DNA from: Ascoidea asiatica JCM 7603
Taxonomy: Eukaryota; Fungi; Ascomycota
Length of the DNA stretch: 34,963 nucleotides
Direction of reading: 5' to 3'
NCBI GenBank assembly: GCA_001600695.1
Contig: BCKQ01000007.1
Span: 530,625-565,587, forward strand
The translations under genes were made by a program, and so were the position numbers. The notes beneath the pieces are model-generated. The model worked only from the letters and a program-made list of their open reading frames with translations, was not told the DNA's origin and did no database searches. Positions within the stretch are counted from its first letter, which is position 1. Every line of letters starts with the position of its first letter. Positions 20,593 through 28,812 of this stretch are shown here, in pieces.

Positions 20593-22979
20593 TTTAAAAA
20601 AATTTGAAATAGTATCGGTATCCGGCCGATATTACCGTGCCGTAATTATGATAAATAAATAAAAAAAAAGGTCTGGATTGCCTATCTCAGAATCTCAAAA
20701 TGTACTTTATTTGAATAAAGTAACCTTTGATGTTATCAATTAATCTACTTAACAATTCAAAATCTCAACATTTGAAGGTAAGTTACAATAAGATGTCTAA
20801 AGGTATATATTTGAAAGTATACCTTTAAATGTATACCGTACTTTTTATTCAGTTCAATTTTAAATCAAAAAATTACCTGTTATTTGGAATTGTTTTGCTC
20901 AAACAAATCATCTTTCTTGTTCAAAGTAAATGTTGCATTTTTTGAATTCTAAATGTTTTGGATAGGTACATATATGAATAAAAGGCCAATATCAGATTTA
21001 GTTCAAATATGACTTGATCTTAGATTAGATTTCAACTTACTTTCTGATCTTAAATTAAATCAAATTTTACGTCAAAGATATTCATTTAAGATAACATATT
21101 CATTAAAAAAAAATAAAACTAATTAACCTAGTTGTTTAATTCTCCTAGCCTAACTTACAACTTTTTAAAAAATGCTCTTTAATAGAATTAATCTTATATT
21201 TTCTTAAATTTATTTTTAATATTCTTGTTAAAAAATAAGCCCATCAAATCCCAGAATCAAGCTCATTATTCTACATATTCAAGTCAAATTATCCTAAGAA
21301 ACATGAAAAAAATAAAATTACTTAACTTTGGTATAAAAATAAATAATTATCAAAAAAGTAACTTGAAAATTTCTTACAGTTTAAAATTTTTATTTTTTTT
21401 ACTTATTATAATAACTATGGTTTCAGTATTTATCCCTCAAAAAAAAACACATTGAGGAAAAATTCTGCCATTAATCACTTAAAATAATAATAAATAATTA
21501 TGTAATTATAATTTTGATAGATTTCTTGATCCTCTACAGTACTTTACAGTACGAATGAGTTTTTTTTCTTATTATACGTAAAACTCTCGTTAATTTTATA
21601 ATTTATGGCTGAAATTTGAAGATTACTTACCCAATATTTGATTTATAATTATTGATAGCTTTTAAAAGATGATATCTTTCAAAAATTCTGCTCACATTGA
21701 AATAAGGTAGTTAGTTAACCTTATAAAGCCGTTAATAGATTTTGAGAAAATTGATTAACAGTTATTTCAATAGTACTGGCATTATATAAAATTCACATTA
21801 TTATGTACTGGCAAGTTTTAAGATATATTTATATTATTGTTTACAAGAATTTTTTTTTGAAAATTCAATATTTCTACTTGAAAACATAAACTTTTTCCAT
21901 CTATTATTTAATTCTAACATAATTCTCATGATTTTTTTACATCTTATTAAACTTTTTGATTACCTCCGAAATACGGTATTCTTTTAAAATTCTTCTTCAC
22001 ATCTGTAGAGTAATAATTAATAATCATAGATAAAAAATATTTTTCAGACATTACGTAAAAGAAGATCTAAAATCACCTTTTTTATAAATGCTAGTTGTAT
22101 TCATATTTGTTCGGTCCGATTCAAAATTTCAAAAATAAATGTTTAAAAAAGAATCAGAGTTACCGTGGACCTTACCAAAATTTCTTAAAAACTGGGCTGA
22201 AAACTTTAAATTTCAACAATTACGTACGCCGGTTTCTTAAGCCCTAATCCCGAAATATCTTACTTTTCACCTGTCTAATCCAGAAAGCGATTGGAAACTT
22301 GCCACATTTCTCTATTATCGGGATTATTTTCTAAATCCATGCATAGCGTTGCCACTCAATGTATATTAAATATAATAAACTTGAATAACATCAACTATTG
22401 TTGCATACTTAAATTGGAGTGGAATGGCAATTTTCCATCAAAATGGGTAAATTTACTTCTCATAAACATTTATCTTTGATTCTAAAATCTTTTTCATTAA
22501 AAAAAAAATATTTTGATTTAAACAATCTTTGAAAACTGAAAAAATAAGCGAAGAATATTTTATTAGATTCACTTTTTTTATTCAACTGTTGAAGTTGATT
22601 ACAATTTCTTCTTTTTTTTTTTTTTTTCTTTCTTGAATTTTGTAGATATTCAGTCAACTGAATTGAATCCATTTACATAGAATCTCAGAATATTAACGTT
22701 TATAAAAAATTAACATAGCATTATAATATACATAATATAACAAAATTTAGGTATGATATAGGGGGAAAAAATAAATAAATAACATAATAGCCTACTCTAA
22801 TTAAACCCCCGTCCCCAATTTGTGAAAGAGGTCCATTAATTTTCTCATAAGTTTCCACATCTTCATCACTCACTAAAGTAGGGACAATGATTTCATTTTC
22901 ATCCCCTTCCAATAAAATTTCAGGGGAATTTCGATTTATTGTTTCCTGATATAAAATTGAAGAATTTTTATTAAAATCC

Positions 22980-25900
22980 TTAGTATTGTGAATCACTATT
23001 GAGTTTTTTTTTTTGTTTTGGCAGCGAATAAACAGGTTGAAAAGATATATCACTTAAATTGGGAGGAGAAATTTTACCTTGAGAAGAATGAACCGTTGAA
23101 ACTTTTTCATGATCATATAGCTGAAAATCTGATTGATCTTTAGATATATTAGAATGTATTTTTTCCTTTTGTTTAAGATGTCGGGGATGAATGGGCTCAG
23201 AAGAAAGTTTTCTTAAATCCTCCTCCACATTTGAATATGAAGGTTTTTCAGCTGAAGAAAAAACTAAGGCAGAATCTTTCCATAAAATTTCCTTAATTGA
23301 TTTTTTTGCTTCTTCTCTATTTATTTTCTTTGTTTCTTCAGTAATTTCGGTTTCATCTTTGTAACTTATATGGACACTTATATCAGTTAAATCAGGCTGA
23401 TAAGCTCCATTCAAAAATTCATCCTCACTATCTAATACAAATAAATTTGACTCTTCATTTGTTTTGCTAGATAAATCTTCATCTCTAATTTGCGTTGCCC
23501 TTTTTCTTTTAGCAGCTGCAATAAATGCATTTCGAAGATCATTCTCATTGTAATGTTCGTTAAGTTCAATGACTGTATTTTCCATATTAGGCAACTTATT
23601 ATTGACCATATTATTTGAAACTCTATCAAAATTTTTATCAGTGAAATCAAACTTGTCATTATCATTATCACTATCAAGAATTTCAATTGCTTCATTTTTT
23701 TGTTTATCTATATTAACAGTGTCTCTAATTATTTCAGGTACAAATTTTTTTACAACTGTCAGGGGTTCTCGTGCAGGTATCCCTTTTGGAGAAAATAGGC
23801 TTTCAAGATCATCTTCACTTTCACTATCTTCAATTTCTATTGGAGAATTTATCCTCTCAAGATGACTACTACTTTTATTGTTTATACTCTTTTCGTAATT
23901 GTCAGCATCTATTATTAGACAATCATCACTAGAAGAGTTGTTTTCTGTCAAGTTATTTTCTTTTTTATCAGCAGTAATCAAAAGCTGCTTATTATCAAGA
24001 GTCTCCGACTTTTTAGGCTCTATTTCTTTCACATTTGAAGTATCTGATTTTTTGTGTTTTCCAATACTTGAAAAATATGATTGACTTTTTTTCCTCTTTC
24101 TTTCTAACATATTTAGTTTTTGAGAATCCTCTATTAAATTATTCACCCATTGGTCTTTAATTTTTTGGATTCTTTCATAGAAATTTTTTCTAGGAAATCT
24201 TTGTGAGAGTCTTTCAATAAAACGAGATTTCTTCAAGACTTCAATCACACTGGAAATACCTGTTTGATCTAATATTGCTTTAGTCATTAATTTGAAATTT
24301 CCGAGCTTTTCTAGACATTTATCAAATAAAATTAATTCTTTTTTACTGATTGTCTTCAAGTTGATAAATCCTTGAATTTGCTTTTTTGCATATTGAACTC
24401 TTCGAATTCTATTGATTGAATCTTCAGATCTATTATTTTTTCGATTCCTTGTTAAATTATTTCTTTTATTACCCAGTTCCACTAATCTGCTTTCTTTGCT
24501 TTCAGAAACATTAAGAAGATCATCCCGACTTTTAACCTCCATTATATCTTCATCAGAAAAATCAGAATAGCTATTATAATCACTATCAACACGAGAATTG
24601 GTTTTCTTTTTCCAAATAGAGTTAAAATCAGTGTCAGATGAATTTTTTCTTTTCTTTCTAGGCTCAAAGGACTCGTCAGAATCGTTCAACAAGTCTCTTT
24701 TATTTATACCATTGGCATTGTTCATCGCAATCAATTTGTTTAAGGAAACATCAGATATATTTGCATCAGAATCTATTCCCTGATTTTCAGCTAGAGCATC
24801 GCTACTATTAATAAATAACGAATCAAGAGAAGATGATGAAATCTCACTTCCAAATTCATCATATTTTCTTTTTCCTTTACGTTTTTTTCCAAAACAAGAA
24901 TTTTTATTTGTTCTTCTATTAGCCAATCGAGAAGTTCTTGTCAACATTTCAGCTTTATTTCTTCTCTTGGAAGTATTAATCTCTTCAATAGGCTCAAAGG
25001 ATGATTCTGAACTCGAGTTTGAATCTGAGACTTCAAATATTTCGGTGGACATGTTTAAATTTCTGTGAATACTTCTTGGCCTACCAACTTTACCTTTCCT
25101 TCGAAAAGGTGTATTTGTAAAAATTGTTTTTGTTTTTTTCGGTCTTCCACGAGGACGCTTTTTTTGGGTTTTAATTATATTTTCTAAGGAATCAGAAAAA
25201 TCGTCATCGGATATTGATATTGCTTTACTACCTACACTCAAATTATCACTATCAGTTTCACTACCAGAAATATCTATAACAGAGTTGTCTTGACTTTCAT
25301 TAGATTTTAAATTTTCCTCAACTTTTGAGGAAATTTTTGCTTTATTATGTGTATTTGGTTCACTATTAAATTCAGAGCTAGAATCTGAGCCAAAATAATT
25401 TTGAAGATACGAAGAAGACAACATAGAATCTTCTTTTGCTTGGAATTCTCTCATTTTATTGTCTTGATCTTTTAGCTTTTTATTCTCAATTATAGAAGGG
25501 CCTTTATTATAAGGACTAATTGAATCTAAATCCGCTGAGACATTATTATTGAGTAAGATTTTTGAAGGATCAATAGTACCAGGAATATTTAGGGGTTCAG
25601 GTATATTTGAAGTTTCTTCTAGGTTTCCATTAGTCAGATTATTGGAATCATTATTTGAATTTTCTGGAGGATCTAATTCTAATCTGAAATTTTCATCAGA
25701 TTTTAAAGGACCATTAAAAAGATTATTTATAGCCGAAATTCTACCTACCTCTAAATTTAAAAAATTATTTAAATCTCTCCAATTTTTTAATTGACATTTT
25801 TCTAAAAAGAACTTAGCATAGTCAACTGAAGTCCATTTTCCTTTTAAAAAATCATTGTTGAGATAAAAAAACTTATTCTTTTTATCAGTCACAATATATT

Positions 25901-27245
25901 CTTTTGTAATATCTACAGTCAACAAATCTCTTATATAAAGTTCTTCTTCTATTGACCAAAGTTTTGCATTTTGCATTCTTTTATAGGACAAATAACCAGA
26001 AATGATTGAAGACATGTTAACAAAGCCATCAGAAAATCTTCTATATATTAAAAATGGTTGAGGTAATTCAGAATTCAAATGGTTTGGAAAAGAAACTTTA
26101 AAACTACACCCAAGAATTTCACAAATATCAACTTTCATTTTTTCTTGATCATTTAAAATTCCTCCTATAGCGGAAATCTTAAAACTTTCAGGAAAATCTT
26201 GATAAGAAAAAGCAACATTTTTTGAATTACTTGAATTATTATCCAAGGAATTATCAATCTTGTTAATAGTATTTCTGTTTTCTACATTTTGATCATTTTG
26301 ATTATTATTTTCAGAAGAAATTGTAAAATTTTGTATTTCCCTATATTCCCATATATTTAAGGGAGCTTCGGTTCTTAATTGATTTAGATTATCACCAGAA
26401 GTATCAAATTCTAATAATGGTTTTAAAAAAACACCAATATGAAATTTTTTACAATAATCAATTCCAGAGGAAAGTTCAATATAATGTCCATGATAAACTT
26501 TATGATTTTCAATATTTTGAATTATATTAAAAGATTGAACAATTGATGATCTTTCTTTTTCTAAATTTGATAAAAAAGATTTATCATCAGCTTCATTATA
26601 AGAAAAATTGGAAAGATTTTGTAAGTGATCATTATCATCATAAAACTTATCAAAAATAATCTTTGCTTGAAACAAATGATCAAGATTAATTAAATTTCTT
26701 TCGTAAGTTCTTAGAATTCTCAAAGTAGTATTTTTTTCAAAATGTATGAAAGATTCCAAAAACACATTTTCATCATAAGAAACTTTTGCAACACGATTAA
26801 AAGATAATATTGGGGATAATAATTGATCTAAGTTATAATATTTTGCAAATTTATTTGCAACAAATAATGGAACCCAAATACCTTGAAATAATCTTGAAAT
26901 AGATGAATTAACTTGTAATAAGAGATTTTGATTATATTCAAAAATTAAATTTGGAGGTATTCTTTTAATATTTTCATTTAAACTTTCAATAGTCGAGTTT
27001 GAATTTTGTAATTTAGATCCAATTGATACTAAAGTGTGAATTGAACTAAGATTAATCCAACCACCAATTTTTTTTCTAAGAATTTGAACAGGTCTTTTTG
27101 AGCCCGGTAATTTTGTTTTATATATATAAAATTCCTCTTTTTCGAAAACTATTGAATCTAAAGATTTATAGCTAGTTATTTCAGGTTCTGCAAGCAGACC
27201 ATTTGAATCATCGAAATCTAAAGAAGGAATAAACATAGAATTCAT
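22980..27245 (-). CDS. Large nuclear protein (1421 aa from first ATG): 3 tandem KilA-N/APSES domains, AT-hooks, TFIIS-N/IBD-like domain, multiple SIM-like motifs
   Basis: Open frame of over 4.2 kb; first in-frame ATG at 27245 (the track's 27302 start is not ATG). Three blocks follow the Mbp1/Swi4 pattern (I)MxRxxDxW(V/I)N...(Y/F)QGxW(V/I)PxxxAxxxAxxxxxxxxLxP(L/I)xxF. AT-hook RPRGRPKK. The true 3' end is uncertain (see findings). Confidence 0.85.
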   Translation of the reverse strand: MNSMFIPSLDFDDSNGLLAEPEITSYKSLDSIVFEKEEFYIYKTKLPGSKRPVQILRKKIGGWINLSSIHTLVSIGSKLQNSNSTIESLNENIKRIPPNLIFEYNQNLLLQVNSSISRLFQGIWVPLFVANKFAKYYNLDQLLSPILSFNRVAKVSYDENVFLESFIHFEKNTTLRILRTYERNLINLDHLFQAKIIFDKFYDDNDHLQNLSNFSYNEADDKSFLSNLEKERSSIVQSFNIIQNIENHKVYHGHYIELSSGIDYCKKFHIGVFLKPLLEFDTSGDNLNQLRTEAPLNIWEYREIQNFTISSENNNQNDQNVENRNTINKIDNSLDNNSSNSKNVAFSYQDFPESFKISAIGGILNDQEKMKVDICEILGCSFKVSFPNHLNSELPQPFLIYRRFSDGFVNMSSIISGYLSYKRMQNAKLWSIEEELYIRDLLTVDITKEYIVTDKKNKFFYLNNDFLKGKWTSVDYAKFFLEKCQLKNWRDLNNFLNLEVGRISAINNLFNGPLKSDENFRLELDPPENSNNDSNNLTNGNLEETSNIPEPLNIPGTIDPSKILLNNNVSADLDSISPYNKGPSIIENKKLKDQDNKMREFQAKEDSMLSSSYLQNYFGSDSSSEFNSEPNTHNKAKISSKVEENLKSNESQDNSVIDISGSETDSDNLSVGSKAISISDDDFSDSLENIIKTQKKRPRGRPKKTKTIFTNTPFRRKGKVGRPRSIHRNLNMSTEIFEVSDSNSSSESSFEPIEEINTSKRRNKAEMLTRTSRLANRRTNKNSCFGKKRKGKRKYDEFGSEISSSSLDSLFINSSDALAENQGIDSDANISDVSLNKLIAMNNANGINKRDLLNDSDESFEPRKKRKNSSDTDFNSIWKKKTNSRVDSDYNSYSDFSDEDIMEVKSRDDLLNVSESKESRLVELGNKRNNLTRNRKNNRSEDSINRIRRVQYAKKQIQGFINLKTISKKELILFDKCLEKLGNFKLMTKAILDQTGISSVIEVLKKSRFIERLSQRFPRKNFYERIQKIKDQWVNNLIEDSQKLNMLERKRKKSQSYFSSIGKHKKSDTSNVKEIEPKKSETLDNKQLLITADKKENNLTENNSSSDDCLIIDADNYEKSINNKSSSHLERINSPIEIEDSESEDDLESLFSPKGIPAREPLTVVKKFVPEIIRDTVNIDKQKNEAIEILDSDNDNDKFDFTDKNFDRVSNNMVNNKLPNMENTVIELNEHYNENDLRNAFIAAAKRKRATQIRDEDLSSKTNEESNLFVLDSEDEFLNGAYQPDLTDISVHISYKDETEITEETKKINREEAKKSIKEILWKDSALVFSSAEKPSYSNVEEDLRKLSSEPIHPRHLKQKEKIHSNISKDQSDFQLYDHEKVSTVHSSQGKISPPNLSDISFQPVYSLPKQKKKLNSDSQY

Positions 27246-27470
27246 CTCCCGAGACTCATTGAAAGAGGACAAATTAATCCAGCTATATGAGATTCCAATC
27301 AATTATACTTTAGCAACTATTTTTTTTATTGGAAGATGATTAATTGATTGATTATTTGATTGATTTGAATAATAACAATTCTATTTTTATTCTTCTTTAA
27401 CCAATTGTACAAATCTTTTGATGTTTTGAATTGAAGAAGACTCGAAATCTCAGCGTCAATAAAAACAAAG

Positions 27471-27476
27471 ACGCGT
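27471..27476. promoter_or_regulatory. MCB element (ACGCGT) about 225 bp upstream of the KilA-N gene
   Basis: Exact ACGCGT in the divergent promoter 27246-28065. Confidence 0.45.
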
Positions 27477-28065: not shown

Positions 28066-28812
28066 ATGCCAATCTTTGAAGCTCCTGCTGTTTATGCAAG
28101 TAGTGCTTTAACAACTGTTAATACTTATCTTATGCAACATTTAGGTTTAAATCAATTTATTAATTTAAGAATTAATGATGCCAATATTGCTCCTTTAACT
28201 ACTTCTCCAACTGTTTTCTATATTCGTAGAGATAGATTTAATAGACATAGAGCTGTTAATGTTTTTGATTCAAATGGTAACAAAATTTATGTTTTCGAAA
28301 GAGAAAGTCCTTTGAATCCAATGTGGGCATTGAAAGATTTACCAAATAGAAAAGAAATCTCTTCAATTAGAGCCGGTTTTTTTTCAACTTCTGTTGATTT
28401 TCATACTGTACCTGATGTTCAGCACAGAGAATTAAAACAAAATTGGTCTTTAGCTAGTGGTAATCATCGTTCTTTTTATTTGGCTGATGGTTTTGAATAT
28501 CAATGGATTAAAGGTTCAAAATATCTTGAAAGAATAAGCAATAAAGGTGCAGGTGATGAAGAATTAAGAAGTAGAATTGCAAGAGTTAGATTAATGAGAC
28601 AATTTAAATTTGATTATGAATTAATATTTGATGCTCTTCAAGTTGATCCAATTGTTGCTTTATCAACTGCTTTTATTTCAATGATGGTAGATTGGGGTGT
28701 AGGTGATATAACTGAAACTAGAGGTCCATATAATTCAACAACTAATGATACTCCAATAACCAATGATACTCCAATTACTACCGATTCACCTTTAAAAGTT
28801 ACAAAAGCATAA
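28066..28812 (+). CDS. Conserved-looking uncharacterised protein, probably tubby C-terminal/LURP/scramblase-like fold, 248 aa
   Basis: Good start context (caaaATG) and biased codon usage. Beta-rich pattern (VNVFDSNGNKIYVFE, SFYLADGFEYQW, RIARV, YELIFD) followed by a terminal hydrophobic helix (DPIVALSTAFISMM). The C-terminus has an 18-bp repeat (TNDTPI, about 3 copies, 28741-28791). Confidence 0.7.
   Translation: MPIFEAPAVYASSALTTVNTYLMQHLGLNQFINLRINDANIAPLTTSPTVFYIRRDRFNRHRAVNVFDSNGNKIYVFERESPLNPMWALKDLPNRKEISSIRAGFFSTSVDFHTVPDVQHRELKQNWSLASGNHRSFYLADGFEYQWIKGSKYLERISNKGAGDEELRSRIARVRLMRQFKFDYELIFDALQVDPIVALSTAFISMMVDWGVGDITETRGPYNSTTNDTPITNDTPITTDSPLKVTKA

Follow-up and report, generated by a model that had tools for sequence, protein, structure and literature searches.

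In fungi, proteins with a KilA-N/APSES domain have a central role in regulating morphology, the cell cycle and nuclear architecture. Four subfamilies – SMRC, APSES, Xbp1 and Bqt4 – are distinguished among them, and the proteins of each carry a single such domain (PMC10375492, PMC4862756). In PCG2/Mbp1, a CGCG core is read by the two glutamines of a QxGxGxxQ wing, with helices A and B contributing basic residues (PMC4333399). The protein considered here carries three of these domains. It is encoded in a stretch of 34,963 nucleotides from Ascoidea asiatica JCM 7603 (contig BCKQ01000007.1, positions 530,625 to 565,587, of assembly GCA_001600695.1, which comprises 71 contigs and 20.3 Mb); we call this stretch the window and use its coordinates throughout. 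A preliminary description of the window had pointed to three consecutive KilA-N blocks in one protein and to a possibly undescribed multi-APSES subfamily. The observation of three APSES/KilA-N domains is confirmed below. Our search of the literature for tandem or multiple APSES domains returned no description of a multi-APSES family, or of the triple architecture, though UniProt gives several members the automatic name ‘HTH APSES-type domain-containing protein’, so that they are not wholly without annotation.

The gene is a single, uninterrupted minus-strand open reading frame (22980–27302 in the program-made list), in which the ATG at 27245, the first one that fits the homologues, is the likely start of a protein of 1421 residues. 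It has no internal stop and requires no intron; for coding DNA of 27.8% G+C, the natural logarithm of the probability of meeting no stop across 1440 codons is about −125. Only five of its codons are CTG, none of them within the domain cores, so the ambiguity of CUG is immaterial to the result. The coding sequence and its three domains, D1 to D3, are laid out as follows.

22983–27245, minus strand: coding sequence of the triple-APSES protein, 1421 residues, with its stop codon at 22980–22982 and homologues at E 2e-20 to 1e-6.
26796–27182, minus strand: D1, first APSES/KilA-N domain, residues 22–150, the closest of the three to Mbp1.
26397–26795, minus strand: D2, second APSES domain, residues 151–283, abutting D1 directly; acidic in this protein, with Tyr replacing a conserved Trp.
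26211–26396, minus strand: D2–D3 linker, an Asn-rich low-complexity stretch with a conserved Trp-containing segment (from the alignment).
25752–26210, minus strand: D3, third APSES domain, residues 346–498, with an insertion between its first strand, FSYQDFPESF, and the core.

All three blocks had been placed in the preliminary description, but D3 begins upstream of the limit of 26135 given there, its first strand lying at 26181–26210. Measured between the envelopes of the hidden Markov models (HMMs), the gap separating D2 from D3 is 102 residues in the window's protein and 62–128 in its family; the linker listed above is shorter because D3 is counted from its upstream first strand.

Taken alone, the protein gives little of this away: against Pfam, D1 matches KilA-N (PF04383) below threshold (E 8e-4, 19.7 bits, cut-off 23.8), D2 and D3 yield no KilA-N match, and a single-sequence search of the Protein Data Bank (PDB) reaches Mbp1 only at E of about 1. 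In a paralogue on another contig of the same genome (C4), D2 and D3 themselves give sub-threshold KilA-N matches in Pfam. Profiles built from alignments A1 to A3, of D1, D2 and D3 from 15–18 homologues each, bring up all three domains. Searched against PDB sequences, each has the Mbp1 DNA-binding domain as its top structure: the D1 profile (1bm8) at E 1.2e-13 over 89 residues, the D2 profile at E 5e-7 over about 97 residues, and the D3 profile at E 1e-4 in two collinear stretches. The profiles also recognise one another in hhalign (D1/D2, 98.3%, E 1e-14; D1/D3, 95.7%, E 1e-8; D2/D3, 94.2%, E 1e-7), and family profiles recognise the three domains of the window's protein at 77–92 bits. Applied to the other APSES proteins of this genome, the D1 profile scores the Mbp1/Swi4-like proteins at 42–45 bits and the Efg1-like ones at 20–23 bits; all three profiles place the Efg1-like proteins below the Mbp1-like ones.

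Predicted structures agree with these matches. The AlphaFold2 model of D1–D2 has a mean predicted local distance difference test score (pLDDT) of 80.6 and a predicted template modelling score of 0.77, and D1 consists in it of blocks of pLDDT 86–92 save for one inserted loop. In the model of the linker with D3, the domain part lies mostly at pLDDT 73–91, with a single dip to 55, and the D2–D3 linker falls below 50. For both models, the top ranks of a Foldseek search are all APSES structures. By alignment to Mbp1-type structures, D2 and D3 adopt the winged-helix APSES fold; D1 is masked by D2 among the matches listed, and its fold is supported by the strongest sequence match of the three, together with a predicted order of strands and helices parallel to that of D2. 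A shape search of the Atlas again matched mainly D2, and an Atlas feature search, with scores below 0.8, gave leads only.

An exhaustive HMMER search over 1.84 billion representative proteins found 16 representatives of a family (E 2e-20 to 1e-6; 823–2130 residues), most of them with three matched stretches. The named members, all uncharacterised, come from Ascoidea rubescens, Komagataella pastoris, Cyberlindnera jadinii, Cyberlindnera fabianii and Wickerhamomyces ciferrii; assembly JXWR01 (GCA_000960405.1) has three paralogues, and the genome of the window has four of the same layout, on contigs C7 (the window's), C4, C2 and C1. The further three are these.

Contig C4, 956150–957565: paralogue with the triple layout.
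Contig C2, 602728–603870: paralogue with the triple layout.
Contig C1, 2688608–2689735: paralogue with the triple layout.

The C2 and C1 paralogues were left out of profile building and nonetheless score 46–98 bits per domain. Altogether, 21 of 21 proteins share the layout, with D1 and D2 abutting and D3 following at the distance given above. Across the N-terminal module, the C4 paralogue and the Ascoidea protein share 60% identity; the best identity of the window's protein to any member is about 26–29%. Word-indexed protein searches were less productive: with the full-length family alignment they were swamped by low-complexity words, returning four known members, and with the query limited to residues 1–520 they found nothing, whereas the N-terminal region of a Cyberlindnera member retrieved five close relatives. 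The family is not known from Saccharomyces or Candida. It is a small, conserved family of budding yeasts, so far unstudied.

In a tree of the individual domains rooted on Efg1-type domains, D1, D2 and D3 form one clade each (96, 93 and 100 in the Shimodaira–Hasegawa-like approximate likelihood ratio test, SH-aLRT), D1 and D2 are sisters (SH-aLRT 83), and all three join the Mbp1-type domains against the Efg1-type ones (SH-aLRT 100). One clade per domain means that the triplication predates the spread of the family. Judged from sequence, then, the three copies stem from an internal triplication before the family diversified, and their nearest relative is the Mbp1-type DNA-binding domain. We hold this structural and evolutionary part of our account – three APSES/KilA-N domains, ancestral triplication, Mbp1-type domains nearest – to be nearly certain. 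The window's protein has the longest branch of the family tree, at 2.02 changes per site, and an ambiguous position in it; it is the fastest-evolving of the four paralogues of its genome.

The genomic position of the gene is consistent with such an origin. In Komagataella, Cyberlindnera jadinii, Wickerhamomyces ciferrii and one Joint Genome Institute assembly, the triple-APSES gene stands head-to-head with a canonical MBP1-type gene, in the following loci.

Locus L017, 7491–12472: triple-APSES and MBP1-type genes, head-to-head.
Locus L018, 7232–12775: triple-APSES and MBP1-type genes, head-to-head.
Locus L019, 499–7083: triple-APSES and MBP1-type genes, head-to-head.
Locus L021, 5072–11132: triple-APSES and MBP1-type genes, head-to-head.

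The neighbour encodes 714–782 residues with KilA-N and ankyrin domains and a canonical Mbp1-type N-terminus that includes a QGGYGKYQ wing. Three of these four genomes have a PSA1-like gene on the far side, with the triple-APSES gene in between; in S. cerevisiae, MBP1 and PSA1 are direct neighbours, which would fit a loss of the triple-APSES gene there. Neither the Ascoidea copy nor the window's copy adjoins an Mbp1-type gene. Overall, the family appears to derive from an Mbp1-type domain.

The likeness to Mbp1, PCG2, Res1/Res2 and Swi4 (SMRC) – best match in sequence and in structure, common grouping in the tree and, in four yeasts, adjacency to MBP1 itself – is accompanied by clear differences. 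Those proteins have one domain, ankyrin repeats and the QxGxGxxQ motif, whereas the triple-APSES protein has three domains without either of the latter, followed by a long, disordered tail whose helical domain is of another kind. Pfam matched no ankyrin repeats in the window's protein, in the C4 paralogue or in nine further members, which bears out the earlier view that this is not a subunit of SBF or MBF; nor, KilA-N apart, did it match any other Pfam domain in the window's protein or the members scanned. Swi6 differs in having one copy of its N-terminal domain, ankyrin repeats and a partner-binding C-terminus, while D1 and D2 are basic in most members of the triple-APSES family. The Efg1/Phd1/Sok2/StuA and Xbp1 proteins belong to the same superfamily but are single-domain transcription factors, and the Efg1 type has lower profile scores than the Mbp1 type and falls outside the group of D1–D3 and Mbp1 when used as the root. 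Viral and phage KilA-N domains are much less similar to D1–D3 than fungal ones, and nothing seen in the family points to a recent viral origin; it looks like an internal fungal duplication.

Bqt4 and MtgA, finally, combine one domain with a C-terminal membrane helix, a tail the triple-APSES family lacks: past residue 500, the highest 19-residue Kyte–Doolittle mean is 1.0 for the window's protein and no more than 1.6 for the family, with the latter peak inside D3. A Bqt4-like tail anchor was therefore rejected, there being no hydrophobic segment of that kind past residue 500 outside D3. The peptide-binding groove of S. pombe Bqt4 includes F46, R48, K50 and F61, and the match of Bqt4 to the D1 profile is marginal (E 0.9), with an alignment limited to the C-terminal third.

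As the preliminary description had noted, the repeats are without the QGG wing of Mbp1. The QxGxGxxQ motif is missing from all three domains across the family, the sole invariant being the Gly before Trp: the first Gln and both Gly are lost, and the second Gln is kept in only 3 of 15 D1 domains – that of the window's protein among them – its position being taken by Gly in D2 and by Asn in D3. The basic recognition helix, likewise said to be lacking, is not kept in D1 and survives in D2 and D3 only in part, as K/R at one position of helix B. Charge is a different matter, as D1 and D2 each have a median isoelectric point (pI) of 9.5 across the family and are basic in most members. In D1, moreover, an R-x-K pair is invariant on the strand that matches the basic-patch strand of Bqt4.

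Beyond D3, the window's protein has three further features.

25674–25700, minus strand: acidic–hydrophobic motif SDENFRLEL, just past D3 (regular-expression survey of 21 proteins), of presumed role.
25071–25157, minus strand: two AT-hook-like motifs, RPRGRPKK and GRPRS (Pfam AT_hook E 0.16, below cut-off).
24096–24440, minus strand: helical domain in the C-terminal half, residues 936–1050.

Variants of the first occur after D3 in most family members (e.g. DDLEII, DSLEVL, EDNFEII); the motif resembles a SUMO-interaction motif and the Bqt4-binding motif alike, and the Phaffomycetaceae members have an extra E-x-D-F motif a few residues beyond it. The AT-hook-like motifs are private to the window's paralogue: a regular expression for AT hooks found none in the other three paralogues and the RGRP core in no other family member, with lone GRP tripeptides in four of them. 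In hhalign, the helical block gives a weak but collinear alignment (probability 52%, E 1.4e-4) with one that the Phaffomycetaceae members conserve; it has no Pfam match and no PDB sequence match. The idea that it resembles TFIIS-N or the integrase-binding domain of LEDGF found no echo at the level of sequence, with no TFIIS_N/Med26 match in Pfam and no TFIIS N-terminal domain (TND) chain among the PDB sequence matches of the block or of the family profile. Basic runs like nuclear localisation signals are visible in the translation.

Combining these features, we propose that the triple-APSES protein could be a nuclear, chromatin-associated scaffold. Its triple module would anchor it to DNA or chromatin, although not to the MluI cell-cycle box (MCB), since the wing motif that reads CGCG is gone; in the window's paralogue, the two AT hooks might add binding to AT-rich DNA; and the long Ser-, Asn- and acid-rich disordered region, with its SUMO-interaction-like motifs and helical domain, might recruit partners. 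As a whole, a three-domain family of chromatin-associated scaffolds with non-MCB binding strikes us as an even bet. Several points weigh against it. The residues with which PCG2/Mbp1 contact DNA are mostly not conserved in D1–D3; D2 of the window's protein, with an acidic insertion and Tyr instead of the conserved Trp, has an acidic pI of 5.8, while D3 is close to neutral across the family; D2 took every Mbp1 match of the D1–D2 model in Foldseek, leaving none to D1; the nuclear location is predicted from composition; and the AT hooks, not found in any other member, cannot account for the function of the family. The fold itself, furthermore, need not imply DNA binding: Swi6-N has it without binding DNA (PMC4333399), and Bqt4-N is an APSES-fold peptide-binding module (PMC6379675). 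The main rival, conceivable if somewhat doubtful, is that the three domains make no contact with DNA but are protein- or peptide-interaction modules like these two, which would turn the protein into a multivalent adaptor. The loss of the wing and the poor conservation of the helix A/B contacts would suit an adaptor, and so would the invariant R-x-K pair, given that Bqt4-N uses a basic patch on its strands to bind helices of the form [acidic x3-4]-x-F-x-x-x-hydrophobic (PMC6379675). The domains might then bind acidic-Phe or SUMO-like motifs, including the protein's own acidic–hydrophobic motif past D3, present in most members and as SDENFRLEL here. On the other hand, the sequence of D1 is far nearer that of Mbp1 (E 1e-13) than that of Bqt4 (E 0.9), and the strongly basic overall character of D1 and D2 in most members fits nucleic-acid binding as well.

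Two more sceptical explanations concern the copy in the window and the domains themselves. Its long branch with an ambiguous position, its low identity to any other member, the altered D2 with its Tyr and acidic insertion, and an A-run near the 3′ end that may upset the reading frame could all be read as drift in a paralogue, from a lineage-specific expansion, that is decaying or without function. We consider this very unlikely, for 1421 codons have stayed open at 27.8% G+C (ln P about −125), family profiles still recognise all three domains at the scores given above, the structure models are confident, and the AT hooks are a gain. That the KilA-N likeness is genuine in just one block and a matter of chance in the other two might have been concluded from the single-sequence Pfam search, which detected D1 alone and under threshold. 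This is barely conceivable in view of the profile matches of D2 and D3 to Mbp1, the mutual hhalign scores, the Foldseek alignments, the scores of the held-out paralogues and the domain tree: all three blocks score as KilA-N, D2 and D3 also fold as such, and the profile and fold results together refute chance resemblance.

A bolder reading, which we regard as speculative and on balance improbable, would make D1–D2 a rigid tandem reader and D3 a tethered third unit, with a composite DNA or chromatin target or with gating by the acidic-Phe/SUMO-interaction-like motif past D3 in the manner of Bqt4. The protein would then work alongside its chromosomal neighbour MBP1 in G1/S control, as a fifth, functionally distinct KilA-N branch that was lost in Saccharomyces. 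If true, a composite reader next to MBP1 would be a new use of the APSES fold and a fifth branch of the virus-derived fungal KilA-N regulators.

Apart from its function, the family extends the four single-domain subfamilies by a fifth branch whose domain is triplicated, and one that has so far been largely invisible to Pfam-based surveys. When nine members were scanned whole, two exceeded the KilA-N cut-off, seven remained below it and none gave three matches; most members falling below threshold would explain why such surveys missed the family. It is also a naturally occurring example of a DNA-reading winged helix which has dispensed with its reading motif and yet been kept in three copies over long evolutionary time, and its presence in Komagataella brings it within reach of an organism where knock-outs, chromatin immunoprecipitation and binding assays are routine.

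The remaining observations concern the surroundings of the gene. An A-run directly precedes its stop codon (window positions about 22700–23020), and about 85 further codons are open in the +1 frame, with a hydrophobic stretch at the end. At the C-terminus, family members share a conserved motif, K-Y/F-R/K-K-L..HFE..T.QDL...GVP...; its profile matched nothing significantly downstream of the A-run, whichever frame was read. The other genes of the window encode a Vps5-like protein, a Fab1-type kinase, an Atg3/Atg10-type protein, mitochondrial S11 and an arginase fragment. On the 5′ side, one short sequence may be listed.

27471–27476, plus strand: ACGCGT (MCB core), the sole match in the 35-kb window, where 0.37 are expected.

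It lies about 230 bp 5′ of the triple-APSES ATG, in an intergenic region shared with a divergent gene at 28066–28812, whose product of 248 residues has no Pfam match at E 0.001. Elsewhere in the genome, two nearly identical Efg1-like genes are found on contigs C8 and C18 (L005, 886–2148; L006, 898–2133), which may reflect a recent duplication or two haplotype contigs of the assembly.

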